DNA of 64,000 nucleotides, from sequence record MZ475891.1. The stretch is one strand, 5' to 3'. Positions within the stretch are counted from its first letter, which is position 1; the number at the start of each line of letters is the position of its first letter. Under the pieces are notes generated by a model, which saw nothing but the letters and a program-made list of their open reading frames with translations, was not told the origin of the DNA and did no database searches. Below, piece by piece: positions 1-34,547 of this stretch. The translations under genes and the position numbers were made by a program.

Positions 1-1446
1 CCGAATATCAAAGAAGCGTACAGGACGGCCATGATGGGCCGTCTTGGCGTTTCCCATTTCAGTTCGGAGATCACTCGCAAAGCATTCCGCCGCATCACCA
101 AGCTGGTGGAAGTTAAAAGCGAAATAATTGAATGGGACGACTTGCTGGAAGACCCGAACTTGGCAGAAGAGTTCAGGGATAGTCTGCGCGAAGCAGATGA
201 GAAGCCAGCAAAGAGCATGAAGGGATTCGACCGCGTCTACGACAATCTGGAGAAGTATCGTCAACGCCGTGACATTATGAATATCGGTAAGATGATTGCG
301 AAAGATTTCGGTGAAGCGGATGCCGAAGAGTTCAACGAGCAAGAGTATATGCAAGGTCTGGCTGATAAGCTGGGTCAAGCGCAACGCGGCACTCGTTCTA
401 CCGAGAAAGTGCATACGTTCGGTGGTAAGAAAAGCAACGCTATCAAACTGGCGAAGCAAGTTATCCTGAACCCGAAAGAGGTGATGTACAAGACAGGCTT
501 CAAGAACTACGACAAACGAAATGGCGGTTGGCCTACAACGGGTGTCGTACTCTTAGCAGGTTCTACCTCTGGCGGTAAGTCTGTAATCTCGATGAACATC
601 GCCGATGCAATGGCAAAGATTAATGGCATCCACTGTTTGAAGGTCACCCTTGAGATGACTGCCGAGCAGGAGATGAAGCGTATGCTGTCCATGATCAGCG
701 GCATCGAGTTCAACAAGATCAAGCAGGGCAAGTTATCGAAGCGTGAGCAGAAGCAGTTAATTGAAGCTGCGAAGCAATACGACAAGATCATGACCAAGTC
801 TAAGGGACGTAACTCATTCACGTCTCCAGAGCGCGGCATGTCTATCGATGACGTTCTGTATATGTCTATCCCGTACGGCGTTCACGTAACCTTCATCGAC
901 TACGTTGGTCTGTTAGAAGGTGTGGACAACGACAACCAGTGGCGTGAACTGTCCACGATTGTTCGTAAAGCGAAAGTACACGCGAACGCAACAGGTCAGC
1001 TTGTTGTTATCCTGTGTCAGCTTGATGACCAGTCTGGTCGTATTCGTTACTCTGGTGGTATGCGTGAGCACGCCGACGTTGTATGGTCATGGAACTACTC
1101 TGACCCTGAGATTCGTGAAGGTCACGTTATCCCGATGCAGGTAATGAAAGCGCGTGATGGTGAGTTGTTCGAAATGGCAATCGCCGAAGCGTTCCACTTG
1201 ATGCGTGTGTCTGACGCAGAAGAAGGTGCTGAGATTCCTCAACGTGCTACAACGTCAGATGATGTTGGTGGATCTCCTGCAAAAGGTAATTTCAAGAAGA
1301 AAGGTAAGGGTAAAGACAAGATCGAAATCAAGAAGTCTCGACGTGCAGCAGCAGCGTTCCTATCAAGCGGCAGCGACGATGATGACGACGATGAAGATCT
1401 GCCGAAGAAGAAAAAGAAACGCAAGCAATATGACGTTGCTGCGTAA
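1..1446 (+). CDS. dnaB: Replicative DNA helicase, DnaB-like (5' truncated by window edge)
   Basis: Frame is open from base 1; Walker A GSTSGGKS, TLEM motif, Walker B FIDYVG, LCQL and KARDG motifs. Confidence 0.88.
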   Translation, partial: PNIKEAYRTAMMGRLGVSHFSSEITRKAFRRITKLVEVKSEIIEWDDLLEDPNLAEEFRDSLREADEKPAKSMKGFDRVYDNLEKYRQRRDIMNIGKMIAKDFGEADAEEFNEQEYMQGLADKLGQAQRGTRSTEKVHTFGGKKSNAIKLAKQVILNPKEVMYKTGFKNYDKRNGGWPTTGVVLLAGSTSGGKSVISMNIADAMAKINGIHCLKVTLEMTAEQEMKRMLSMISGIEFNKIKQGKLSKREQKQLIEAAKQYDKIMTKSKGRNSFTSPERGMSIDDVLYMSIPYGVHVTFIDYVGLLEGVDNDNQWRELSTIVRKAKVHANATGQLVVILCQLDDQSGRIRYSGGMREHADVVWSWNYSDPEIREGHVIPMQVMKARDGELFEMAIAEAFHLMRVSDAEEGAEIPQRATTSDDVGGSPAKGNFKKKGKGKDKIEIKKSRRAAAAFLSSGSDDDDDDEDLPKKKKKRKQYDVAA

Positions 1447-1457
1447 AGGAACTGACC

Positions 1458-1706
1458 ATGAGTGATATTCAGCTACAGGAATTCACGCAAGAAATTCGTG
1501 ATGACCTGTCGAAAGACTTTGTGTATCACATCCGTACCAAGGACGGTACGGAGCACACTGGTATGTGGCCCAACTATGCAGGCTTTCATTGTCTCAACCC
1601 AAATGAGGGCAAGCGCATTAGTATGGATGATGTTACGCACATCAGTGAGCAAATGACCTTCGACGATCACTCGGACAAATACGTCTTCAATCGTGAAAAA
1701 GTTTGA
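1458..1706 (+). CDS. Hypothetical protein
   Basis: 82-aa ORF with AAGGA RBS, packed after the helicase. Confidence 0.7.
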   Translation: MSDIQLQEFTQEIRDDLSKDFVYHIRTKDGTEHTGMWPNYAGFHCLNPNEGKRISMDDVTHISEQMTFDDHSDKYVFNREKV

Positions 1707-2490
1707 GGGTCCATACGGGCTAGTTGAGTCCGATAACCTTGTCCCACGTTGGACGTACCCTATTGTGCATGGTAGAGTTCGTCAGGTAGAAGCGTGGGAA
1801 CTTGATACGCTACCAAACGTTTCCACAGAAGTTCGTATGGTAAACGATATTCATGCAATTCACAGCACCCCCGTAGAGGATTATGATGACACAATCGACC
1901 TCGAAGCAGAAGCCGAAACGTATTCAAAAACTGAATCCCGACTTCTTATCAAACCTAAGCTCAATGAAATCAGAGCCCGTAAAAACCAAAGTAACACTGG
2001 TCCAGAGAACGTCTTCTCTGTAGCTCCTGAAGTTCTTGACCGTACGCTGGACAGCATTGATCAGCACAGCGAATCCTTCCGTGATTACCTGTTGCATCAA
2101 GTGTTCAGTCCAATCTTAGGCTTTGATATAGCGGCGGGTGAAGTCGAAGCAATTGCGCGTGATTGTCTCAAGACCCCTCTTGAGATCGACAGTGAACTCG
2201 TTCCCTATCTCGAACGAATCGGACTTGCTAATATCATAGGAGTGATGTTGGGCAAATCTGAGTCTGTACCAGAAATCGTGCGTGCAGACGTACTCAAAGA
2301 CTGGCTGATTAAGTCATTCGATGATATTCGTTTAGACAATAAAACGAAAGCTAACGGTACGAAGCTGCGTGATCAAATACGCCGCCTGATGCACGGTAAC
2401 GACGAGCTAGTTGCTCAAGGTGCTGGCATTGGTTCTACCCGAGGCTATTCGGAAGCGAGGAAGCAACAGAAAGAAAATGGCAAAGCCTAA
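1693..2490 (+). CDS. Hypothetical protein (position compatible with a terminase small subunit)
   Basis: 265-aa ORF overlapping the terminase start; function suggested by position only. Confidence 0.55.
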   Translation: MKKFEGPYGLVESDNLVPRWTYPIVHGRVRQVEAWELDTLPNVSTEVRMVNDIHAIHSTPVEDYDDTIDLEAEAETYSKTESRLLIKPKLNEIRARKNQSNTGPENVFSVAPEVLDRTLDSIDQHSESFRDYLLHQVFSPILGFDIAAGEVEAIARDCLKTPLEIDSELVPYLERIGLANIIGVMLGKSESVPEIVRADVLKDWLIKSFDDIRLDNKTKANGTKLRDQIRRLMHGNDELVAQGAGIGSTRGYSEARKQQKENGKA

Positions 2491-5311
2491 GAAGGGTCCA
2501 GCCTTCCAACTTCGTCCCAAGCGCATAGCTGCATTCGATGCACTGCTTGGTGATGATTTTGAGGAGGCTTCATCTGAGGCGGAAGGGTTAGACTTCCTCT
2601 CAGAAAATAGCGCTAATGCCATAGACTTCCTTGAGAAAGGGGAAGTGAACGTAGTTGACTTGGTGGAGAGTGCGCTAGAGCAGCGTACCCTCGTACCACG
2701 CGACTTGAAGTTCGATGATAGCTCAATGCCGAAAGCAAAGAACTTCTTGGACTGGTGTACTAATCCAAAGTTCCTTAAAGCTGAGCCGTATCTTGAGCAG
2801 GCCATGATCGGTCTGCGTTTGTTTGGTGAGATCTGCGTAAGATGTTCGCCTAACCTACAATGGATGTATACAGAGAATCATGAGCCGCAGGAGGGTACTG
2901 CCGCTATCGGGAAGCATTTGCATCTTCTCCATAACGGTGTGTGTCCTCACTGCGGCGCTCGTCGTTCTGATATGATTCGTAACAAGGAGATTAACTTCTA
3001 CAACGAGCTGGCAGTGAATGCCGGTCAGCGTTGTGTGATTGCGTCTACGCCTGTAGCGACGAACAACGGCATCATGCCTATCGGTCACATGATGATCGGT
3101 CATGACACGCCTGGCTTCCACAAACCTCGTCGCAATTTCAGTGCGCACAACGGACGTGAGATCAAAAAGGTTAGTCAGGTCTATGTGTCAAGCGAGAGTC
3201 CTACCAAGGTCATTACACTCGCTAACGGCATCTGGATTGAAGCAACACACGATCACCCTATCCGTACAGAGACGGGCTTTAAGAAGACCGATAAACTCGT
3301 GCGTGGTGAACGTGTTGAAGTAGCTGTCGGCACGAACACGTGGGGCAAGATACAGCGTCCTACGACTATCTACGAAGCTGGATTGTCTACGCGTGAAGAT
3401 GCGTTGCGATACATTGCAGACAGATCGATTCCGTTCGGCGAAAGCAAGCTACAGTACGTCTCAGAGGACGTTGACGCGATTCAGATGGTATGGTCTATTC
3501 TGCTTAACGCGGGATTTGTGCCGAGCGTGCTGCATGGTGGCGAGGGTTATAGCGTTCTCTACTCTCTGACCGATGAGCCTCAGCGTTGTTCTAAGCACAT
3601 CGAGATCATGTTCGTTGAAGAGGGTACGCCGCAGATAACATACGACTTGCAGATGGAAGGTCTGCCTCAGTTCGTAGCGTCCGGCCTCGTACATCACAAC
3701 AGCGGTAAGTCAGTTGTTGTTGCAATGATCTCTACCTATCTGACGCACAGACTGCTTATGTCGCAGTCGCCTACGGGCATCTTGAGCATCGACAGCACAA
3801 CCGTATTGCACGGTACGTTCGTTGCTCTTACCCAGAAGCAAGCGGCAGATACATTGTGGACTCCCTACTTCAACTACATCATGGGCAGTCCCTGGTTCCA
3901 AGCATACCATGACCTGATTCGTAAACACGAACGGCGCTATGGTATCGAAGTAATGAAGATTCGTGACACGTTCATTCTGTACGGTCACCGTAGCTTTGTT
4001 ATTTATCCTGCAGGTCCTGATGGACGTATTCTTCGTGGTCGAACCCGTGTACTAGCGGTAATCGATGAAGTGGCGTATTTCGACAACGACGCCCAATCGA
4101 AGAAAATCAAAGTCAGTGCTAATGCCGTGTACGGCGCTCTCGACCGCTCGCTCGCCACTGTGCGTGCTAAGGAGAAGCGGCAAGTCGAAGCCGGATATGA
4201 TGAGGCGTTTACGGGTTACTTCTGCAACATTAGTAGCCCGGTACATGCACGCGATAAGATCAATGAACTGATGCGCATGGCAGTTGACTCGAAAACGTTG
4301 CTGGGCATTCATGCTCCTACGTGGAAGATGAACCCAGACATGCCGCGTGACTCAGAGTTCTTGCTCGAAGCGTTCCGTCGTGACCCTGTTGGTGCGGCGC
4401 GTGACTACGGTGCAGAAGCTCCGTTGTCTGCTAACCCGTTCATCACTCAGCCTATCTTTATCGAACAGGCGATACGTGATAAGGGTCGTTCGCTGTGCAG
4501 CTACACGCATCATATTCTACGTCACAAAGATGGCCAGAGACAGCGTTATGGTAGTCTCGTTAAAGCAGTTGAGACAAACAAGAACAGCATCCTCGCAATC
4601 GATGCAGGCTATTCAAACAACAGCTTCTCGCTGGTGACTGGTAGCCGTGACGAAGCAGGGATCATCTCGGTAGACTGCGTTGTGGAGATTATTCCTAAGC
4701 CAGGCATACCTCTCAACTACACGATGATATTCGATGAACTGCTTGTGCCTCTGTGTCGCCTGCGTAACGTTCGCGTAATGCTTGCCGACCAATGGCAGTC
4801 CCTCAAGCTGCTGCAGGATGCGAAGATCAAATGTCCTTCAATCGAAGCTGCCGACAAGTACAGTCTCAAGTATGAGGACATGTGGACAGTTAAGACGATG
4901 TTTGAATCTCAGCCGTCGCGTATCAGCCTGCCTCGTATGGGCTTTGCGAAGACCATTCAGGAAACGTTGCAGTATAACGGTGACGAGTACCCACACTGCT
5001 TTGAGAACAAGCCTACAGAGCACTTGATAATGCAGCTACAGACTGTGCAAGACACAGGCCGTGGCGTTATCAAGAACACAGGTGCAACAGATGACTTGTG
5101 GCGTGCTATGGCTCTCATGGTATATGGCTTTGAGTGTGGTGAATATGAGGAGTTCTTGTCCACTCCTGCGAAAATCAGCGTTAACCGTGACCCGAATCGT
5201 CTGGGTCGTGTTGCTGGTCGTCTTAACAAAGGTGTTGCAGGGTCTAGTGGTAAGACAGCTCCTACTCGCGTTCTTGGTAGCGCTGCGACTCGTATGATTG
5301 GTCGCAAATAA
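2477..5311 (+). CDS. terL: Terminase large subunit, intein-containing
   Basis: Walker A AGQR/SGKS split by an intein, Walker B LAVIDEVAYFD, nuclease motif LAIDAGYSNNSF; likely start ATG 2477. Confidence 0.88.
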   Translation: MAKPKKGPAFQLRPKRIAAFDALLGDDFEEASSEAEGLDFLSENSANAIDFLEKGEVNVVDLVESALEQRTLVPRDLKFDDSSMPKAKNFLDWCTNPKFLKAEPYLEQAMIGLRLFGEICVRCSPNLQWMYTENHEPQEGTAAIGKHLHLLHNGVCPHCGARRSDMIRNKEINFYNELAVNAGQRCVIASTPVATNNGIMPIGHMMIGHDTPGFHKPRRNFSAHNGREIKKVSQVYVSSESPTKVITLANGIWIEATHDHPIRTETGFKKTDKLVRGERVEVAVGTNTWGKIQRPTTIYEAGLSTREDALRYIADRSIPFGESKLQYVSEDVDAIQMVWSILLNAGFVPSVLHGGEGYSVLYSLTDEPQRCSKHIEIMFVEEGTPQITYDLQMEGLPQFVASGLVHHNSGKSVVVAMISTYLTHRLLMSQSPTGILSIDSTTVLHGTFVALTQKQAADTLWTPYFNYIMGSPWFQAYHDLIRKHERRYGIEVMKIRDTFILYGHRSFVIYPAGPDGRILRGRTRVLAVIDEVAYFDNDAQSKKIKVSANAVYGALDRSLATVRAKEKRQVEAGYDEAFTGYFCNISSPVHARDKINELMRMAVDSKTLLGIHAPTWKMNPDMPRDSEFLLEAFRRDPVGAARDYGAEAPLSANPFITQPIFIEQAIRDKGRSLCSYTHHILRHKDGQRQRYGSLVKAVETNKNSILAIDAGYSNNSFSLVTGSRDEAGIISVDCVVEIIPKPGIPLNYTMIFDELLVPLCRLRNVRVMLADQWQSLKLLQDAKIKCPSIEAADKYSLKYEDMWTVKTMFESQPSRISLPRMGFAKTIQETLQYNGDEYPHCFENKPTEHLIMQLQTVQDTGRGVIKNTGATDDLWRAMALMVYGFECGEYEEFLSTPAKISVNRDPNRLGRVAGRLNKGVAGSSGKTAPTRVLGSAATRMIGRK
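3032..3700 (+). mobile_element. Intein (223 aa) in the terminase Walker A motif
   Basis: Starts CVIASTPV, block B ATHDHPI, ends LVHHN, followed by Ser; removal restores AGQRSGKS. Confidence 0.9.
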
Positions 5312-12970: not shown

Positions 12971-13741
12971 ATGAGCAATATCGATACCACAATGCCTGAA
13001 GGCAAATGGGAGTTCAACGAGTCGGTTGCTTGCGTGTTTGATAACATGCTGCAAAACTCCATCCCATCTTATGCCCGTATGCGTGACCTGACGTATCGTC
13101 TGGGTCGTCGCTTCGTAACCCCGGGTTCAGCTATCGTTGATCTCGGTGCTTCACTCGGCCGAGCTATCGAGCCGTTTGCAAAAGAGTTCGGCAAGTATGA
13201 CTACCATCATGCTGCTGACGCTCCTGGCGAAGACTACGAAACAGGCAATCACTATAGCCTGTACGAAGTAGCGCCTGCGATGCGTGAACGTCTGGTGCAG
13301 AATGAAGTGCTCAACTCAGTGAATGCCAAACTGGAAAGTGAATCGCTGGTCGATGCAGACACGTTTATGTTTGATGGGCAAGTGCATTGCTCGCTGATTC
13401 TGAGTGTACTGACGCTCCAGTTCACGCCGATTGAACATCGTCAACACATTCTGGAAAACGTGTACAACTCACTGCAACCAGGCGGCGCATTCATCCTCGT
13501 TGAGAAGGTGTTAGGCGATAACAACTATCTCGACAAAATGCTGGTGGACACCTACTACCAGATGAAAGGCGGTAACGGTTACAGCGCCGAGTCGATTGCG
13601 ACTAAACGTAAGTCACTGGAAGGCGTACTCGTTCCTGTTAAAGCAGCGTGGAACGAAGAACTGTTGCGTAAAGCAGGCTTCGGTCAGGTAGAAAGTTTCT
13701 ATCGCGACCTGAACTTCGCAGGATGGATTGCTATTAAGTAA
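12971..13741 (+). CDS. cmoA: CmoA-like carboxy-S-adenosylmethionine synthase
   Basis: WEFNESVACVFDNM..SIPSY, DLGASLG, TLQF, LQPGGAFILVEK, KGGNGYS..I.TKRKSLE and AGF..V..F...NF all align with CmoA, including the KR Arg. Confidence 0.85.
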   Translation: MSNIDTTMPEGKWEFNESVACVFDNMLQNSIPSYARMRDLTYRLGRRFVTPGSAIVDLGASLGRAIEPFAKEFGKYDYHHAADAPGEDYETGNHYSLYEVAPAMRERLVQNEVLNSVNAKLESESLVDADTFMFDGQVHCSLILSVLTLQFTPIEHRQHILENVYNSLQPGGAFILVEKVLGDNNYLDKMLVDTYYQMKGGNGYSAESIATKRKSLEGVLVPVKAAWNEELLRKAGFGQVESFYRDLNFAGWIAIK

Positions 13742-13750
13742 GGAAATACT

Positions 13751-15013
13751 ATGAAAGTAAACGGGCGTATCTTAGCTATCGTCCCACACAAGACAATGCA
13801 AGACCGTACCAAGTCGGGTGTGGGTTCATACATTGATGGGCTAGAGGCCTACGGCTTCTGCGACTTTATCACAGACGGAGAGAATAGCTCCGTTACGAAA
13901 AGTCAGTGGTTCACTTATGGTGACACTACTCTCAGTGACGGTTATAAGATAGGGCATATCCAGAGCGAGTTGCTGATTGCACTTGAGCGTCTGCCTTACC
14001 GTGCGATTATTTGCAGCACGTATGAGGCGATTGAAGCCTGCGTGTCTCTAGGTCTGCCGAAGATTATGCCCGTTTACTATCGCACGCACAACAGCTTTTT
14101 GCTCACACAAGATCTCAAGGGTCTTGGTGCAGAGAAGATCCACCGTGCGTTGTTACAAGCGAAAGTCACAGGGCTGCGCATCCTTGCTAACTGTGATTCG
14201 ACTGCGATCAATCTTGCTGAGCGCTATAAGACGCCAGCGCACGTTGCCTACAACTCGTTCTCAGTGCCTGACTACAACCCACCAGCTAAACGTGTTCCAC
14301 AGTTGTTGATTATCTGTCGCTATGAGAAGGTCAAGCGCACGTTGTTTGCTGCGCGTATTGCTGCTGCATCAGGACTACCCGTTCGTGTTATGACAGGCAG
14401 TGATCGTCAAGCACGCAATTGGGAGAAAGAGCTGGCTGAGGCGGGCGTCAAAGAGTATACGGTCGTCAGTGGCCTTAGCGGCAAACAGAAACTCGAATTT
14501 ATAGGCGCTTGCACCGTAGCCCTTTCTACTGCGAGCGTTGAATCATTTGCTAATGGTGTGCGTGAGTCCATACCTTACTGCCCTACCTTTATCGTGCAGA
14601 CATCCAAGTACGATTGGGCTAAGGACTATACGCGCTTCTGTACCGCCGACAAGCATGTTCATATCAGAACTGTTGATCGCGTATCGGACCAAGCCGTAGC
14701 TGAAATCGGAAGTGAGATAGCGCAAACAGCTACCACTCGTTATCTGACAGGACCTCAGCGTAAGCAGCTACTGACTGCTTGGGCAAAGCAAGTTGATCGT
14801 GGTTGGTCCGACTTTGTTCAGAAGGCTGTTGTTGACGATGACGGCAAGCCGCTGCGCACCGAGCTGTATCAAGAACTGATCGACAAGTCAGAGATCGATT
14901 GGTCACAAACGCCCACGCTGATGCGTACTGTAAATGCGTTACATAAATGCCACGCTCGTTTGGGCCTGACATTTGATGGCACTAAAATCAAATATAAGAG
15001 GAAGCGCAAATGA
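13751..15013 (+). CDS. GT-B fold glycosyltransferase-like protein
   Basis: C-terminal domain CRYEKVKR...; EX7E motif ESFANGVRE. Confidence 0.65.
   Translation: MKVNGRILAIVPHKTMQDRTKSGVGSYIDGLEAYGFCDFITDGENSSVTKSQWFTYGDTTLSDGYKIGHIQSELLIALERLPYRAIICSTYEAIEACVSLGLPKIMPVYYRTHNSFLLTQDLKGLGAEKIHRALLQAKVTGLRILANCDSTAINLAERYKTPAHVAYNSFSVPDYNPPAKRVPQLLIICRYEKVKRTLFAARIAAASGLPVRVMTGSDRQARNWEKELAEAGVKEYTVVSGLSGKQKLEFIGACTVALSTASVESFANGVRESIPYCPTFIVQTSKYDWAKDYTRFCTADKHVHIRTVDRVSDQAVAEIGSEIAQTATTRYLTGPQRKQLLTAWAKQVDRGWSDFVQKAVVDDDGKPLRTELYQELIDKSEIDWSQTPTLMRTVNALHKCHARLGLTFDGTKIKYKRKRK
14928..14935 (+). promoter_or_regulatory. CTGTAAAT motif (putative phage promoter)
   Basis: 74 nt upstream of the 15010 start. 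Confidence 0.45.
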
Positions 15014-16086
15014 GTGTTATCGGTGATATTTATAACATCCCACAACCTTTCGCAATGTATGTCGGGAATTGTGAGACGCGTGCTCAAGCCAAAGTTGCTG
15101 CGGGCACAATCGAGTGGGCGCCAGAGAAAGTGTGCTGCACCGTAGATGATGGTAACAACCTGTTCCCTAACGTACCTTCAATCAACCCTGCTGACGTGCA
15201 TAAGACAGATGCAGAAACTTTAGTGATTGGCTGTGCACCTTTCGGCGGCCGCATTGACGAGCACATGGACAAAGCTATTCGTAGCGCTATCTATCGTGGA
15301 CGCAACATCGCTGCTGCTATGCATACGCGCCTGGCGGATAATCCTGAATACGTTGAGCTGGCTGATCGCTACAACGTCAAGCTGTATGACTTCCGCCATC
15401 GTCCTGATGCGTACCCACTCGGTACTGGTGAGAAGCGTAGCGGTCTGCGTCTGTTAACTGTCGGTACTGATAGCTCATGCGGTAAGAAGTTTACCACGCT
15501 GTCTCTGTATCGTGAACTCAAAGCTATTCATGAAGCCACTACGTTCTGCTCTACTGGCCAGACGGGTTTCTTGATTAGCGGTTGCGGTATCAACAACGAC
15601 ACGATTGTTGCCGACTTCCTTGCTGGTGCCGCTGAATCACTTTCGCCTGATGGTCCTGCTGATCATGTTTATCTGATTGAGGGTCAAGGCGCTATCACGC
15701 ACCCAGCATACACAGGCGGCAGTATGAGTCTGATTGCTGGCTCGCAGCCTGATCATCTCATCCTGTGTCACGCATGGAACCGTCAGAATCAGTTGGGCGT
15801 TAAGCGTAAGCCTGACCTTGATTTTGAGATGCGTGCTAACATTGAAGCGGCACGTATTCACGGTCTCAACCCGACTTACATCGGTATCAGCATTAACTTC
15901 TCTGAGTGCAACCTCACCGCCGATGAGCAAGATAAAATCCTGTACCAACTCGCATCCACGTATGAGATTCCCGTGTTCGACCCCTCACAGGACACTTCTG
16001 TGTTGCGTGACCTCGCTCGTATGTTAGCAACTAAAGCCAAAGCAAGGAGCCTCGATGGCCAAGCATCCCCTACGCAAGCTGTTTGA
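15010..16086 (+). CDS. DUF1611 family P-loop protein (DgcN-like N-acetyltransferase family)
   Basis: VGTDSSCGKKFT, STGQTG, DFLAGAAE, IEGQGAITHPAY, GSQPDHLILCH. Confidence 0.8.
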   Translation: MSVIGDIYNIPQPFAMYVGNCETRAQAKVAAGTIEWAPEKVCCTVDDGNNLFPNVPSINPADVHKTDAETLVIGCAPFGGRIDEHMDKAIRSAIYRGRNIAAAMHTRLADNPEYVELADRYNVKLYDFRHRPDAYPLGTGEKRSGLRLLTVGTDSSCGKKFTTLSLYRELKAIHEATTFCSTGQTGFLISGCGINNDTIVADFLAGAAESLSPDGPADHVYLIEGQGAITHPAYTGGSMSLIAGSQPDHLILCHAWNRQNQLGVKRKPDLDFEMRANIEAARIHGLNPTYIGISINFSECNLTADEQDKILYQLASTYEIPVFDPSQDTSVLRDLARMLATKAKARSLDGQASPTQAV

Positions 16087-16930
16087 ACAGCATGTGAAAA
16101 AAGAAGTGAAAGCAGACAAGGTAGCTGTACTGCTTTCATCTGGCCTCGATGGTTTGGTTGGCGCATTAGCTGCACACGACCTGGGCAAGAAGGTACATGC
16201 CTTCACATTCCAAATGGGTGACAACCCTAGCTTTGACAGTCGCCACGCACAGATTGTTGCGCAGAAGATGGGTTGGGAGTTCACGCTTGTTAAAGTTCCC
16301 ACCAGCGTGTCTGCTATCGCATTAGCATGGCGCGTGTTGCACTCCAAATATCGCTGCATCAAGAAGCGTGACTATGAGTGTGCGTACCCTATGGTCTATT
16401 GCTACAAGGCAATCAAAGACGCTGGGTATAAGTATGTGCTAAGCGGGCTGGTGGCTGATGGTTACTTCCTGTATAACCGCAACACGCACATTCAGAAAAT
16501 CAGCGGGCCACACTCTGACGCTCAGAAGTATCATGAGTTCCGTACTCAATACTTTAGTCCGTGGCTTAAACACGGTAAGAAGTCTCTGGGCGTTGACGGG
16601 TACAACCCGAGCGGTATGTTGCAGCATGAAATGTTGTGCGATAACTTCGGCCTGATTCACGTTAACCCGTGGATGCAGAACAAGGTGTTTGACTACTTCA
16701 TCAAATACACTTGGCAGGAGCTGAATCAGCCTAAGCAGAAGATGCCACTAACCGAAGCGTGGGCAGAACACATTGCTCTTGTTGGTCATCGCCCACACAG
16801 GGGCTATCAGACAGAAGCCAAAGTGCCTGAATACTTTGAGCATCTGATCGATAACCCTGAGATTAACTTTAACGGGCGCAAGCGCATCATGGACGTGGCA
16901 CGCGACTGGTCCAAACGAGAGCCTGAATAA
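16055..16930 (+). CDS. ATP-dependent amide ligase (asparagine-synthetase C-terminal domain only)
   Basis: PP-loop LLSSGLDG and VLSGLVADGYF (cf. VLSGEGADELF); no N-terminal glutaminase domain. Confidence 0.72.
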   Translation: MAKHPLRKLFEQHVKKEVKADKVAVLLSSGLDGLVGALAAHDLGKKVHAFTFQMGDNPSFDSRHAQIVAQKMGWEFTLVKVPTSVSAIALAWRVLHSKYRCIKKRDYECAYPMVYCYKAIKDAGYKYVLSGLVADGYFLYNRNTHIQKISGPHSDAQKYHEFRTQYFSPWLKHGKKSLGVDGYNPSGMLQHEMLCDNFGLIHVNPWMQNKVFDYFIKYTWQELNQPKQKMPLTEAWAEHIALVGHRPHRGYQTEAKVPEYFEHLIDNPEINFNGRKRIMDVARDWSKREPE

Positions 16931-19557: not shown

Positions 19558-19959
19558 ATGAGACCTGAAAACATTTCACGCACCTATCGCGTCGGTCAGT
19601 CTGACCTGGAGAAAGCACACAATGTCTGCGGAGAGAACAATGTAACACTCTCAGATGTGGTGCGCAGATACATCGAAAGAATCGTACTGACTGAGGGTGA
19701 GTTCCTTATGAACGAGCGTAAGCACGTACCTGAGTCCCAACTGAATGTACGCCTGCCCTTTTATATTGCGCACTCCTTTGCATCTGTGTGTAAGTCTCGT
19801 GGTACGTTAGCCTCTAAAACCATTCTCAACTTTGTCAAGAATATTGCTCTTTCCGGGACTATCCCTGAGGAGTTAAAGTATGCTTCTGACGCAGAGTTGC
19901 GTGCCTATATTACCTCAGAGCGCTCTCGCCTCGATGCACTGGAAGCAAAACTCAAATGA
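19558..19959 (+). CDS. Tandem ribbon-helix-helix DNA-binding protein
   Basis: Two RHH-like units: SRTYRV...TLSDVVRRYIERI and LNVRLP...LASKTILNFVKNI. Confidence 0.6.
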   Translation: MRPENISRTYRVGQSDLEKAHNVCGENNVTLSDVVRRYIERIVLTEGEFLMNERKHVPESQLNVRLPFYIAHSFASVCKSRGTLASKTILNFVKNIALSGTIPEELKYASDAELRAYITSERSRLDALEAKLK

Positions 19960-20795
19960 TTCTAACTAGTCCCATTCGCTATCAGGGTAACAAGCGCACT
20001 CTGATGCCTCTTATTCTCGAACATGCGCCTGTGAAGGATTGCGTTCGCATGATAGACGCATTCGGTGGTAGTGGTACTGTTGCGCTTAACATGCCGCACA
20101 AGTTTCGCATCTACAATGAGCTGAGCACGCCTGTGTTTGAGATCGTCCAGTTGCTTGCGCATCAAGACCCGAAGAAAACATTGGGTCAGATTAAGCGTAT
20201 CGTCAAGCGTTTTTGTCTAACCAATAGCAGCCAAGACAACTACGACATGTTCCGTGCGTATGTGCAGAAGAAGCCTAGCCCTCTTCACCATTATATCGCA
20301 CACAGGCACGCACGCTCTAACATGCTGCGCTTCAACCAGAAAGGCATCTACAACGTGCCGTTCGGTGAGCGTGGTCTGATTGGTAAGTTCGATCAGCTTG
20401 AGCAGGAGCTGGTGCAGTTCCACGAGCGTATGCAGAACACGCACATCACCAACATGCGCTATAACCTGTTGCTCAAGTCCGTGTCAAAGCATATCGGACC
20501 GAACACGTTCATTTACTTTGATCCTCCGTATCTTGCTAGTGGTGCGATGCAGTACGGCAAGTGGACTGAGCACAACGAGCGCAACCTGCTGTCCGTGCTT
20601 GAGTATCTGAATCGTCAAGGCTGCCCGTGGATGTTGAGTAACGTTCTCCAGCATCGGCACCACACGAACGACTTGCTCAAGCGCTGGCTAAAGAAACACG
20701 CAACGACTGTCATCTATCCTGACAAGTCTTATTCAATGGCCAACTCTCATTCCGATAGTCACAGCACTATCGAGATTCTGGCAATGAACTACTGA
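19956..20795 (+). CDS. dam: DNA adenine methyltransferase (Dam family)
   Basis: SPIRYQGNK, DAFGGSGTV, YNVPFG, YFDPPY, WMLSN. Confidence 0.9.
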   Translation: MILTSPIRYQGNKRTLMPLILEHAPVKDCVRMIDAFGGSGTVALNMPHKFRIYNELSTPVFEIVQLLAHQDPKKTLGQIKRIVKRFCLTNSSQDNYDMFRAYVQKKPSPLHHYIAHRHARSNMLRFNQKGIYNVPFGERGLIGKFDQLEQELVQFHERMQNTHITNMRYNLLLKSVSKHIGPNTFIYFDPPYLASGAMQYGKWTEHNERNLLSVLEYLNRQGCPWMLSNVLQHRHHTNDLLKRWLKKHATTVIYPDKSYSMANSHSDSHSTIEILAMNY

Positions 20796-28611: not shown

Positions 28612-29712
28612 ATGACGGGTCCTCTCGATCTCACTAACCCACAGCACTTCGAACTGTACTCGTTGCACAGCGTTGATGCGCAGTACATCAATCTGTGTGA
28701 CGCACTCCTCACGCAGGGTACGCACGAATCTGACCCAGATCGCACTGCCGATACGTGGCATACGCTGATCGGTATTGGCTTCCAGTTGTCTAACACCAAC
28801 ATCGCTTTCCCTGCGCTGCTGTCTAAGCGTGTCAACGTCCGTGCAGCTATCGATGAATCCTGCTGGTTCGCACGCGGTGAAACGAACATCGCAACTCTCG
28901 GTTCTAAAATCTGGAACGAGTGGGCAGATGAAGAAGGTGAGAACGGTCCTATCTACGGCTTCCAGTACCGTAACTGGCCTGACATTAAAGTGTTCAACAC
29001 TGTCGAAGGCATGATTGAGCAGCACATCCCACCAGCGATGATTGAGCGCATCTCGAAAGAGATCAACCGCATGAAGGCGCAGGGCTATATCGAAACTGCG
29101 TTGCCTGATGGTCGCGTGTTGTACGAAGGTTATATCGATCAGTACGCTGATGCACTGCGTCAAATCATGGCGCGTAGTCGTAGCCGTCGCATTCGTGTGC
29201 AAGCGTTCAATCCGGGTTACGTTGGTATGCAGAGCCTGCCTCCGTGCCATACCGAGTTTGAGTTCAACGTAACCAAAGCCACTGCGTATGAGATTGCGCA
29301 GATGGAAGCACGCTCAATGCGCCCTGACGCTGACTCACTGCATATCGTGGTGACGATGCGCAGCAATGATGCACTTCTCGGGCGTCCCTTCAATATCGTT
29401 GGCTACAGCGCCATGCACCAGTTGTTTGCGAAGTGGGCTGGTCTGAACGTTGGTTCGTTTACTCTGAACGTTACCAACATGCACATGTACGATCACCACC
29501 GAGAAGCGTATGCACAACAGCGCGAGCAGTGGCTGGAGCTACAGACGCAGATGCAGACGACAGGTAAACCTGTTGTTTACCCAACTCTCGAAATCACTGA
29601 CGACATTCTGGGCCTGACTCCAGAAGAGCTGCTGGATAACGTCAACGTCGATTGGTTCGAGCTGGTGGACTACTCTCCTAAACCTGCTGTTAAAGGACGC
29701 GTAACCAAATGA
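28612..29712 (+). CDS. thyA: Thymidylate synthase
   Basis: IWNEWAD, GPIYGFQYRNW, SRRI, LPPCH, RSNDALLGRPFN, NMHMY. Confidence 0.95.
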   Translation: MTGPLDLTNPQHFELYSLHSVDAQYINLCDALLTQGTHESDPDRTADTWHTLIGIGFQLSNTNIAFPALLSKRVNVRAAIDESCWFARGETNIATLGSKIWNEWADEEGENGPIYGFQYRNWPDIKVFNTVEGMIEQHIPPAMIERISKEINRMKAQGYIETALPDGRVLYEGYIDQYADALRQIMARSRSRRIRVQAFNPGYVGMQSLPPCHTEFEFNVTKATAYEIAQMEARSMRPDADSLHIVVTMRSNDALLGRPFNIVGYSAMHQLFAKWAGLNVGSFTLNVTNMHMYDHHREAYAQQREQWLELQTQMQTTGKPVVYPTLEITDDILGLTPEELLDNVNVDWFELVDYSPKPAVKGRVTK

Positions 29713-31711: not shown

Positions 31712-32410
31712 ATGGCAAAAATTGCTAAAGCAAAGGAAGGGAAAAAGAAAAGCAACCCTATGTTGATTGACCTGAAAAAGTTCAAGTCAGTTAAACAGCT
31801 TAAGGGTGCGAAGTACAACCCTCGTTTCATTACAGACAGCCGACTGAGAGCGCTCGAAGGTTCTTTGGGCAGCTTCGGTGATTTGTCTGGCGTGGTGTTC
31901 AACAACAGCGTGGACAGTGGCGTGCTGATCTCAGGCCACCAGCGCCTCAAGTCGATTGAGAAGTGGGACTCGCGCATTGAGATTCAGCAAACGTCTGACA
32001 AGTACGGCACGGTAGCGCTGGGTTATATCCATGCCACCAGCGCCAAAGGTAAAACGATCAGCATCCCACTGCGTATCGTTAACTGGTCAGATAAGAAAGT
32101 GGAGTTTGCTGCTAACATTGCCGCGAACGCCCACGGCGGTGAGTTCGATAACAAAAAGCTCGCGTCACTTGTCGAGAAGCTGGACCTGACTACAATCAAG
32201 CCAGCTCTTATCGGGCTTGACCCGTTAGAGATTCGCGGCCTGCAACAGACGCTGAGCAAACAAGCTATCGTCGAGCAGGAAAAGCGTGTTGGTAAAACAA
32301 CAGGCAAAATGAACGGCAGCACCGGCGAGTTCAAAGAGTACACGACTGATGAAGTTGGTACTGCGCTGACCTGCACCTGCCCACGTTGTGGCTTTAAGTT
32401 CGAGGGATAA
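31712..32410 (+). CDS. ParB/Srx-like N-terminal domain protein with C-terminal zinc ribbon
   Basis: KYNPR, LISGHQRLK, ANIAAN; CTCPRCGFKF. Confidence 0.78.
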   Translation: MAKIAKAKEGKKKSNPMLIDLKKFKSVKQLKGAKYNPRFITDSRLRALEGSLGSFGDLSGVVFNNSVDSGVLISGHQRLKSIEKWDSRIEIQQTSDKYGTVALGYIHATSAKGKTISIPLRIVNWSDKKVEFAANIAANAHGGEFDNKKLASLVEKLDLTTIKPALIGLDPLEIRGLQQTLSKQAIVEQEKRVGKTTGKMNGSTGEFKEYTTDEVGTALTCTCPRCGFKFEG

Positions 32411-32411
32411 C

Positions 32412-34547
32412 ATGATCATCAAGCCGCCTACAATGAAAGAGATTAATAAGCTGCCCAAGCCCTGGTCAGGTATGAGTTTCTTTGCAGGTTGCGGTGGTTC
32501 ATCTACCGGTCACAAGATGGCCGGCATTAACATCCTACTGAGCAACGAGTTCGTGGACGCGGCTCGTGAATCGTATGAAGCGAACCATCCAACAACCAAA
32601 GTGTTGCCCCACGATATTCGTCGTCTTGACCCGAAAAAGCTGCTTAGCTATTGCGGCCTGAGCCAAGGCGAACTGGACTTGCTTGACGGCAGTCCTCCGT
32701 GCTTCACCGAAGACACGTTCATTCATACTGACACTGGTATGAAGTTCATCACTGATATGCGCATCGGTGACTTCGCTATGACCTCTGTTGGTAAGTATCA
32801 TCCTGTGTATGACACGATGGTGCGTCCGTATGACGGTCAGATGCACAGAATTGAAACGCTGCTCGGTCAGAACAATGCAACACCTGAACACCCATTCTTT
32901 GTTCGTCGTCAGAGCGAAGAAGGTGGCGGGTACAGTGCGCCGTTCTGGTGTGACGCTAAAGATGTGCAGGAAGGTGACCTGTTAGGTACGCCTCGTGTTA
33001 CGCCTGACATGGGTGAAGCACACACGCACGAGATTATCTCGTCGTTGACCGCGCAGCTTGTGCGTTGGATTGCATTGCCTGAGTTCTGGTGGCTGATTGG
33101 ACACTGGTGCAATCGCGGTGCAATCGATAAGATTCGTGGTGTCGATGTTATTCAATTCACCTCGATGACAGCGATGGAAAACTCGCTGGTGGAACAAGCG
33201 TTCGACGTGCTCAAGTTAAGCAGCATCAACAGCGCTTCGTCCGACATGGGCGTTCATCGTAAGACCGTTCGTGTTGTTATGGACACAGACCTGTTGCTGT
33301 TCTTGCGTATGTTCATCGCACAGGGCAAGAAGTCTATGTCACGCCGTCTGCCTGGCATGATCTTCCATCTGGCTAAAGAGCTGAAACAGCAATTCATTCT
33401 CGGCTATCTGGGTCGTGATTACGTCACAGCAATGGGCGTTGGTCATGCGTTAGAGGCTGACTCAAAGCGCTTCCTCGTTGAGATGAATTACCTGTGCTGC
33501 TCTGCGTTCAACCGACCGCTGTTCGATGCAATGTTGTTCACTGACTTGCACTACGGCAGTCCGATGTTACCGCCGAGTCGCTTCATTACCAAAGAGCACA
33601 TCGGCTTCCTGTTCTTGCAAGAAGAGGTTAATTTCTTCTTCGAGTTCGAGCCGGAAGACCCGCATCTGTGGGTTGAAGTGATTGAGAACTTTACGCACCA
33701 TGAAACGTGCAACGTCTATAACTTCTCAGTCAGTGTTGATGAGACGTATGTTGCTAACGGCATGGTCGTGCATAACTGCAAAGGGTTCTCGACTGCTGGC
33801 GTGAAAGAAGACGGCTGGGGTAAAGAGGTTAAGTACAGCGGCAACAAGTATCAGCAAGTCGATGACCTGTTCGATCAGTATTGCCGTATGCTCAAGCACA
33901 TGCAGCCTAAAACGTTCACTGCGGAAAACGTTAGTGGCCTCGTTAAAGGTGCGTCGAAGGGTTACTTCATTGAAATCATGAAGACCTTTGATCAGCTGGG
34001 TTACTATGTGCGAGCACCGTTGCTTAATGCTGCGTGGCTTGGTGTGCCTCAGTCTCGTGAACGTATCATCTTTATGGGTGTGCGCAAAGACGTGGCGAAA
34101 GCACTCGGTTATAAAACTGCGTTGACTGCTGTGCCTGATGTAACACCTCAATCAAGCATGGCATTCCTTGCAGATGCATTGCCGAACATTCGTCGCTATA
34201 AAGGTACGGAGCGTGACATTATCAAGTATCTGCCTGCTGTTAACGGGCCGATGCCTACGATTACCGCCGCTGACGCTATCGCATACGAAACAGCACGCTT
34301 CTCCTCTGCTGGCTTCATTGAAGACGACAAAGGGCACAGACGCAAGCTGACGATTGATGAACTCAAAGTTGTATCAGGCATGCCTAGTGATTACGTGCTC
34401 ACAGGTAAGTTTGAAGAACAATGGGAACGTCTCGGTCGTGTGTGCGTACCTGCAATGACGTGTGCTGCGGCAAGCGCGTTGATACGCCATGTGCTTGAGC
34501 CTTACGCGAAGCTGCGTAAAAAGAAACCTGGGGATCGTTTTCGTTAA
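32412..34547 (+). CDS. DNA cytosine-C5 methyltransferase homolog, intein-containing (candidate carboxymethyltransferase)
   Basis: Motif I FFAGCGG, IV SPP/CKGFS (split), VI ENVSG, VIII QSRERI, IX RKLTIDE, X LGRVCVP; ATG 32412. Confidence 0.88.
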   Translation: MIIKPPTMKEINKLPKPWSGMSFFAGCGGSSTGHKMAGINILLSNEFVDAARESYEANHPTTKVLPHDIRRLDPKKLLSYCGLSQGELDLLDGSPPCFTEDTFIHTDTGMKFITDMRIGDFAMTSVGKYHPVYDTMVRPYDGQMHRIETLLGQNNATPEHPFFVRRQSEEGGGYSAPFWCDAKDVQEGDLLGTPRVTPDMGEAHTHEIISSLTAQLVRWIALPEFWWLIGHWCNRGAIDKIRGVDVIQFTSMTAMENSLVEQAFDVLKLSSINSASSDMGVHRKTVRVVMDTDLLLFLRMFIAQGKKSMSRRLPGMIFHLAKELKQQFILGYLGRDYVTAMGVGHALEADSKRFLVEMNYLCCSAFNRPLFDAMLFTDLHYGSPMLPPSRFITKEHIGFLFLQEEVNFFFEFEPEDPHLWVEVIENFTHHETCNVYNFSVSVDETYVANGMVVHNCKGFSTAGVKEDGWGKEVKYSGNKYQQVDDLFDQYCRMLKHMQPKTFTAENVSGLVKGASKGYFIEIMKTFDQLGYYVRAPLLNAAWLGVPQSRERIIFMGVRKDVAKALGYKTALTAVPDVTPQSSMAFLADALPNIRRYKGTERDIIKYLPAVNGPMPTITAADAIAYETARFSSAGFIEDDKGHRRKLTIDELKVVSGMPSDYVLTGKFEEQWERLGRVCVPAMTCAAASALIRHVLEPYAKLRKKKPGDRFR
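32700..33776 (+). mobile_element. Intein (359 aa) with degenerate LAGLIDADG-like region
   Basis: Starts CFTEDT, block B ATPEHPFFV, ends NFSV...VANGMVVHN, followed by Cys. Confidence 0.92.

Follow-up and report, generated by a model that had tools for sequence, protein, structure and literature searches.

We analysed bases 1-64000 of MZ475891.1 (hereafter the window, 64,000 nucleotides), which belong to the genome of the Erwinia amylovora jumbo phage pEa_SNUABM_13 (264,714 bp), and found that the open reading frame (ORF) at 32412-34547 very probably encodes the precursor of a DNA cytosine C5-carboxymethyltransferase of the CmoX family. This assignment is based on the homology of its product to SpCmoX of the Synechococcus phage S-B43, on an Arg that aligns with R350 of that enzyme, and on the presence in the same genome of a homologue of CmoA, the synthase of carboxy-S-adenosylmethionine (Cx-SAM), and of a CmoY-like ligase. 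SpCmoX was described as a naturally occurring DNA cytosine C5-carboxymethyltransferase that depends on Cx-SAM (Yang et al., Nat Commun 2025, PMC12783734). Its R350 stands in the place of M.HhaI N304 and is in direct contact with the carboxymethyl group of Cx-SAM; the wild-type enzyme takes Cx-SAM only, and in Escherichia coli it produced 5-carboxymethylcytosine (5cxmC) only when cmoA was present (PMC12783734). The virion DNA of S-B43 contained only the glycine amide of 5cxmC, and SpCmoY is the ligase that joins glycine to 5cxmC (PMC12783734).

The ORF as delimited mechanically (32388-34547, 719 amino acids), whose 2,160 bases are 100% identical to the same positions of MZ475891.1, begins at a GTG codon and overlaps the end of an upstream ParB-like gene (stop at 32410). 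The true start is probably the ATG at 32412, because it is preceded by a GAGG Shine-Dalgarno sequence and because RefSeq uses ATG for the orthologue of phage pEa_SNUABM_7; residue numbers then shift by 8. The product matches PF00145 (C-5 cytosine DNA methylase) with an E value of 6.3e-38, in two pieces split by an intein/Hint region. It exceeds the cut-offs of both PF00145 and TIGR00675, and the canonical motifs of C5-methyltransferases (C5-MTases) are all present. In motif X, where SAM-dependent C5-MTases have GN-A/S-V-P, the canonical Asn is missing and the sequence reads G-R-V-C-V-P, the Arg being residue 684 of the 719-residue ORF (676 counted from the ATG). A preliminary description, made from the sequence alone, had reported the decapeptide WERLGRVCVP at this place and had put its Arg where C5-MTases have the motif X Asn. 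Translation bears out the decapeptide and its Arg codon (CGT), and alignments to R350 of SpCmoX and to the GNAVP of M.HaeIII agree with the placement.

Indeed, the best match of the product in the PDB (HMMER) was 8YF3, the structure of SpCmoX (E = 1.8e-54), followed by M.HaeIII (E = 1e-16), M.HhaI (E about 1e-7) and M.MpeI (4DKJ, E = 1.5e-4). The C-terminal HMMER alignment between the window (EQWERLGRVCVP) and 8YF3 (QQTERVGRMVPP) was gap-free and placed R684 on R350, and a MAFFT alignment, likewise gap-free at motif X, gave the same correspondence. In the weaker alignment to M.HaeIII the Arg falls on the Asn of GN-AVP. The residues through which SpCmoX contacts its cofactor, F25, E47, F48, D69 and C98, correspond to F32, E54, F55, D76 and the +1 Cys that follows the intein (see below). 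These columns are kept in 118-120 of the 120 best homologues, which were retrieved with the exteins joined in silico at the predicted splice junction. For structure prediction the unaltered precursor was used. The AlphaFold2 (AF2) model had predicted local distance difference test scores (pLDDT) of about 90 in the exteins, moderate scores in the Hint parts and about 25 in the central intein domain, which was not modelled. Its top PDB match by Foldseek was again 8YF3 (E = 5.1e-15; target-normalised template modelling (TM) score 0.77, compared with about 0.5 for M.HhaI), and the extein regions superpose on that structure.

Among the 120 closest database homologues the motif X column holds Arg in 114, Asn in four (P0051, P0059, P0060 and P0117) and Met in two (P0103 and P0110). 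The Asn- and Met-bearing members of the CmoX clade may represent reversions to the use of S-adenosylmethionine (SAM) or changes of cofactor. We tried P0051 as a natural control, but its contig, of just 5.9 kb, was uninformative on CmoA neighbours. In the Erwinia jumbo-phage orthologues examined the Arg is kept throughout, as GRVCVP or GRICVP. Because 114 of the 120 homologues and all of these orthologues have it, the motif X Arg is, as judged by its conservation, no chance substitution.

The window protein thus shares with SpCmoX the C5-MTase fold, the SPPC catalytic motif, the motif X Arg and the cofactor-contact residues, and differs from it by a 359-residue intein. With M.HhaI and M.HaeIII it has motifs I, IV, VI, VIII and X and the overall fold in common; unlike it, these enzymes have Asn in motif X and use SAM, and their match scores are far lower. 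The engineered variant N374K of M.MpeI offers a parallel, in that a basic residue replaces the motif X Asn beside the transferable group and leads to the use of Cx-SAM, as cited by Yang et al. (ref. 21 in PMC12783734). In contrast to the window protein, however, that residue is engineered and is Lys rather than Arg, and M.MpeI is CpG-specific and only a distant relative.

The other requirement of such an enzyme, a source of Cx-SAM, had also been named in the preliminary description, and the window does contain a CmoA homologue (coordinates of all features are collected in Table 1). It matches TIGR00740 with an E value of 6.6e-40, and its best PDB matches are the CmoA structures 4GEK, 1IM8 and 4IWN (E = 2.8e-28 to 1.4e-25). 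It is 28% identical (E = 1e-25) to the experimentally verified SpCmoA. The central proposal of that description, that a natural Arg in motif X in a genome with CmoA is the signature of a Cx-SAM-dependent carboxymethyltransferase, is thereby supported by the homology to SpCmoX, the match to R350, the CmoA gene and the CmoY-like ligase, all of which point to the predicted activity. Precedent contradicts its expectation that exchanging the Arg for Asn would restore methylation, since SpCmoX R350N takes neither SAM nor Cx-SAM (PMC12783734). The experiment that it proposed, expression in E. coli with and without cmoA followed by LC-MS of the DNA, is the one that Yang et al. performed for SpCmoX (PMC12783734).

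Table 1. Positions of the predicted Cmo system of phage pEa_SNUABM_13 in the window, and of the regions compared with it
Feature	Coordinates	Strand	Basis
CmoA homologue (Cx-SAM synthase)	12971-13741	+	TIGR00740, CmoA structures in PDB
420-residue GT-B (GT4-like) glycosyltransferase-fold protein	13751-15013	+	AF2 model, Foldseek
DUF1611/DgcN-like protein, 358 residues, overlapping both neighbour genes	15010-16086	+	Pfam, NF041892, PDB
CmoY-like ATP-dependent amide ligase (asparagine-synthase domain, no glutaminase domain)	16055-16930	+	PF00733, SpCmoY
ParB-like protein, directly upstream of CmoX	31712-32410	+	phrog_620 ParB-like, E = 2.3e-31 (PHROGs)
Putative CmoX precursor, C5-carboxymethyltransferase homologue with intein	32412-34547	+	PF00145, PDB 8YF3, Foldseek
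359-residue intein (CFTEDT...NGMVVHN) between SPP and the catalytic Cys of motif IV	32700-33776	+	Intein_splicing, Hint_2, TIGR01443
Cys +1 of the C-extein, catalytic Cys of SPPC after predicted splicing	33777-33779	+	Corresponds to SpCmoX C98; invariant in 120 homologues
Motif X of CmoX, WERLGRVCVP	34422-34451	+	Translation; gap-free on SpCmoX 345-354 TERVGRMVPP
Arg codon CGT, predicted binder of the Cx-SAM carboxylate	34437-34439	+	Aligns with SpCmoX R350 (M.HhaI N304)
CmoA-ligase region compared, window	12971-16930		
CmoA-ligase region compared, Yoloswag (L010)	1159-3746		
CmoA-ligase region compared, Y3 (L011)	1142-3733		

The intein (ORF residues 105-463) was recognized by PF14890 (Pfam Intein_splicing), by Hint_2 and by TIGR01443 (intein C-terminal region). 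It has the features of a class 1 intein, namely Cys1 (CFTED), the TxxH of block B (TPEH), the terminal HN (VVHN) and a +1 Cys, each of which is conserved in all alleles compared. The S, P, P and C of the catalytic motif are invariant in the 120 homologues; in the window protein the motif is complete only after predicted splicing, as the intein lies between SPP and C. An intein-less homologue 69% identical to it (P0001) reads DGSPPCKGFSTAG across the junction, exactly as predicted, and intein-less homologues read SPPCKGFSTAG over it. The same insertion site is occupied in P0004 (259 residues), in P0017 (171 residues) and in the metagenomic contig L007 (L007:7783-10014), the exteins of which are almost identical to those of the intein-less L009. 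All Erwinia orthologues examined (pEa_SNUABM_7, Y3 and Yoloswag) have the intein, and megablast matches to Dickeya phage AD1 and Erwinia phage Alexandra also span it; the CmoX of the Pseudomonas jumbo phage PaBG is without one. The exteins are better conserved than the intein, at 80% against 66% identity with Y3 and 76% against 42% with Yoloswag, a difference that speaks for a functional enzyme. The LAGLIDADG-like blocks (window, FWWLIGHWCNRGA; L007, FWWIVGRFLGDGW) are canonical in L007 (GRFLGDGW, GYVSADGRE) and look degenerate in the Erwinia alleles (GHWCNRGA, GYL---GRDY). This suggests that the homing endonuclease has decayed while splicing, as predicted, has been retained; degeneration of a homing endonuclease does not impair intein splicing.

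The CmoA homologue is the first of four genes whose reading frames overlap or nearly abut, forming one tight operon. The second gene encodes a protein for which no family match was obtained by sequence in Pfam, PHROGs or a PDB sequence search. Its AF2 model (pLDDT 79.8), however, resembled GlgM, BshA and the glycosyltransferase of phage HY126 in Foldseek (E about 1e-9 to 1e-8, TM 0.5-0.6), and three of its seven homologues gave weak matches to PF00534. The third product matches PF07755 (2.1e-46), PF17396 (5.5e-18) and PDB 7XRJ (3.3e-53), and also the DgcN family NF041892 (2.2e-86), under its cut-off. The fourth, the CmoY-like ligase, matches PF00733 (6.2e-13) and is 33% identical to SpCmoY over residues 14-286 of 291 (E = 3e-50); a PDB sequence search gave no match for it. 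pEa_SNUABM_13 thus resembles S-B43 in having CmoA and an asparagine-synthase-type ligase in its genome, and in the ParB-domain neighbour of CmoX that many members of the family have. It differs from S-B43 in that CmoX is about 16 kb from CmoA and CmoY rather than adjacent to them, in the two added genes of the CmoA operon, for the GT-B-like and DUF1611 proteins, and in being a 265-kb jumbo phage with an enterobacterial plant pathogen as its host.

CmoA and CmoX occur together in 48 Erwinia records of the phage collection and in Dickeya AD1, and the genes that accompany CmoA vary among these phages. A cassette of glycosyltransferase (GT), DUF1611 and window-type ligase genes is present in 21 records. 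AD1, Alexandra and others have DUF1611 and ligase, apparently without the GT, judging from gene coordinates and the AD1 annotation. Y3, Yoloswag and others, in turn, have neither GT nor DUF1611 and only a different ligase, with an oxygenase gene slightly downstream; no homologue of this 'oxygenase' was found within the 64-kb window. Between the window and Y3, CmoA is 84% and CmoX 73% identical, whereas the window ligase is only 24-29% identical to that of Y3 and Yoloswag, and over part of its length only. It is 57-69% identical to the ligases of metagenomic GT-DUF1611 modules. The conservation of CmoA beside diverged ligases, and the closeness of the window ligase to the metagenomic modules, therefore indicate that a putative tailoring cassette has been exchanged among related Erwinia and Dickeya phages. 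This variation further suggests an end product that is not the same from phage to phage and may exceed the glycine amide.

Linkage of these genes is seen outside the Erwinia phages as well. ParBc-domain neighbours are frequent at CmoX genes (PMC12783734), and the ParB-like protein upstream of CmoX in the window, which had no match in Pfam or NCBIfam but was recognized in PHROGs, is 44% identical to the ParB-like nuclease beside CmoX in PaBG (KF147891.1, genes 176-180; L003 5897-9860). There, genes for the ParB-like protein, CmoX, CmoA, a 150-residue hypothetical protein and asparagine synthase are contiguous, and the CmoX, 50% identical to that of the window, carries the motif X Arg. The PaBG cluster therefore has the same four gene families as the window (ParB, CmoX, CmoA and asparagine synthase), and differs in being contiguous, in lacking intein, GT and DUF1611 genes, and in a ligase that is just 24% identical. 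We predict that PaBG, too, is a 5cxmC-modifying phage; in the paper on its genome, asparagine synthase appears under the metabolic genes, and a role of the cluster in DNA modification is not discussed.

The GT-DUF1611-ligase trio recurs in linkage with CmoA in metagenomic contigs of unrelated phages (L004 and L007-L009), and one lineage also shows a direct link to CmoX: L008 has CmoX, GT, DUF1611, asparagine synthase and CmoA contiguously, with L007 and L009 as its neighbours. In L016, too, the genes are adjacent, CmoX being physically linked to CmoA and a CmoY-like ligase. The distant gene contexts that proved informative were obtained by looking up exact proteins. A scan of IMG/VR for the GT-like protein returned just five contigs, of jumbo-phage size, with proteins 78-99% identical to the query. 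Day et al. (2018) had listed genes for a methyltransferase, an asparagine synthase, a 'transcriptional repressor' and a DNA-cytosine methyltransferase that AD1 and Y3 possess and the related phage JA11 lacks. The first of these is the CmoA homologue, and the repressor gene has the same position as the ParB-like gene here, a likeness of position. We count this joint presence and absence as evidence that the genes work together.

Some further genes were noted in the same regions. In L004 the Cmo module is followed by a gene of the DAHP_synth_1 family (L004:14162-15025, 287 amino acids; DAHP or KDO8P synthase), which could feed prephenate for CmoA or give a sugar donor. The window has a thymidylate-synthase homologue at 28612-29712 (PF00303, 2e-56), whose 366 residues extend about 100 beyond the 266-position Pfam profile. 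A similarly enlarged ThyA is encoded close to CmoX in L015 (353 residues), and a ThyA of 321 residues about 6 kb from CmoX in L016. A dCMP/cytidine deaminase homologue (PF00383, 24171-24686) and a D12-class N6-adenine DNA methyltransferase (PF02086, 8.6e-26; 19956-20795) are encoded in the same early region, and the phage probably also carries N6-methyladenine.

Several observations weigh against the assignment of the window gene to the carboxymethyltransferases. The CmoA homologue, at 137 bits, scores under the curated NCBIfam cut-off of 193, and CmoX lies about 16 kb away from the CmoA operon. The placement of the Arg comes from sequence alignment, the structure search having given fold-level scores, and the residues that follow the Arg, VCVP, depart from the A/S-V-P-P of most of the family. 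Because identity to SpCmoX is 37% and the target-recognition region does not align, the specificity and even the cofactor preference of the window enzyme are extrapolated. As that region does not align, we also rejected a transfer of the GC specificity of SpCmoX to it. An ordinary SAM-dependent 5-methylcytosine methyltransferase, which would tolerate the Arg without any effect on cofactor choice, would fit the complete set of canonical motifs and the scores above the cut-offs of PF00145 and TIGR00675, and the Asn and Met of six close homologues indicate that the position is changeable within the clade. However, the nearest characterized relative has the same Arg, takes Cx-SAM only and is inactive with SAM, nearly all homologues share the residue, and CmoA and a CmoY-like ligase co-occur with CmoX here and are linked to it in PaBG, L008 and L016; we consider an ordinary methyltransferase highly improbable. 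An enzyme that is inactive or only conditionally active, because its intein is not, or only sometimes, spliced, so that little or no DNA is modified, also appears improbable. The catalytic Cys is indeed the exact point at which the intein breaks motif IV, the LAGLIDADG-like blocks of the intein appear degenerate beside those of L007, and its central domain was not modelled by AF2. Yet the reading frame is intact, the residues expected to carry out splicing are conserved in every allele, the exteins are more constrained than the intein across phages at 76-80% extein identity, and decay of the endonuclease would leave splicing unimpaired.

A further possibility refines the assignment to CmoX and is compatible with it: the relevant base may be a more complex hypermodification set by the cassette near CmoA, with neither 5cxmC nor 5-glycyl-carboxymethylcytosine as the final form. 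The arrangement of CmoA, GT-B-like, DUF1611/DgcN-like and CmoY-like genes in one partly overlapping operon is in favour of it, as are the linkage of the trio to CmoA and CmoX in unrelated metagenomic phages, the three cassette types among Erwinia and Dickeya phages, and the ligase, which sides with the metagenomic modules despite the closeness of CmoA to that of Y3. On the other hand, DNA need not be the substrate of the GT-like and DUF1611 proteins, and the ligase is still a recognizable relative of the glycine-ligating SpCmoY. On balance we put this possibility a little below an even chance.

Returning to the predicted carboxymethyltransferase, we infer how the system would work, from splicing and the use of Cx-SAM to the target sequence, the amine substrate and the end product. 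The intein would splice out, joining ...DGSPP to CKGFSTAG... and so creating the SPPC motif, and the mature enzyme of about 352 residues would bind Cx-SAM, which the phage CmoA, and possibly also that of the host, would make from SAM and prephenate. The motif X Arg would pair with the carboxylate of Cx-SAM, at the position of the Asn of methyltransferases; the catalytic Cys would attack C6 of the flipped-out cytosine, and transfer of the carboxymethyl group to C5 would give 5cxmC in the phage DNA. The CmoY-like ligase would then adenylate the 5cxmC carboxylate with ATP and amidate it, and the GT-B-like and DUF1611/DgcN-like proteins would probably elaborate the amide further. The phage would then package DNA whose hypermodified cytosine shields it from host nucleases. 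Because the S-B43 virion held only the glycine amide, and because pEa_SNUABM_13 has a ligase and two further tailoring genes, the final base is probably a derivative of 5cxmC and not free 5cxmC; a glycosylated or N-acylated amide is one candidate. More broadly, we tentatively propose, with rather more doubt than conviction, an extended Cmo system in which a conserved CmoA and an intein-bearing CmoX install 5cxmC and exchangeable cassettes convert it to differing, as yet undescribed hypermodifications.

The principle of the motif X Arg is already known, having been published in December 2025 by Yang et al., who counted 5,615 candidates (PMC12783734). Our literature search returned no other paper that describes a natural Cmo system in a phage. 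Neither the text nor the supplements of the study by Yang et al. mention Erwinia, Dickeya, SNUABM or inteins, and its main text does not mention jumbo phages or DUF1611 (PMC12783734). None of the terms searched for occurs in a comparative review of jumbo phages, and our literature search found nothing on Erwinia phages, inteins or DUF1611 in a Cmo context. The intein in CmoX, the GT-B-like and DUF1611/DgcN-like genes of the operon and the exchange of cassettes are thus absent from the one CmoX paper found and appear to be unreported.

These results show that a signature of DNA carboxymethylation, the motif X Arg, is legible in raw sequence. They also widen the predicted reach of the CmoA/CmoX/CmoY system, so far demonstrated in one cyanophage, to many jumbo phages of enterobacteria. 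Inserted at the catalytic Cys, the intein adds another case of inteins that target active sites, and it matters for anyone expressing CmoX. Phages of the pEa_SNUABM series are described as under development for the biocontrol of fire blight; a hypermodified genome, if true, would affect the restriction sensitivity, the host range and the sequencing behaviour of such biocontrol phages. The added GT-B and DUF1611 genes, together with the exchange of cassettes, point to a new cytosine chemistry.

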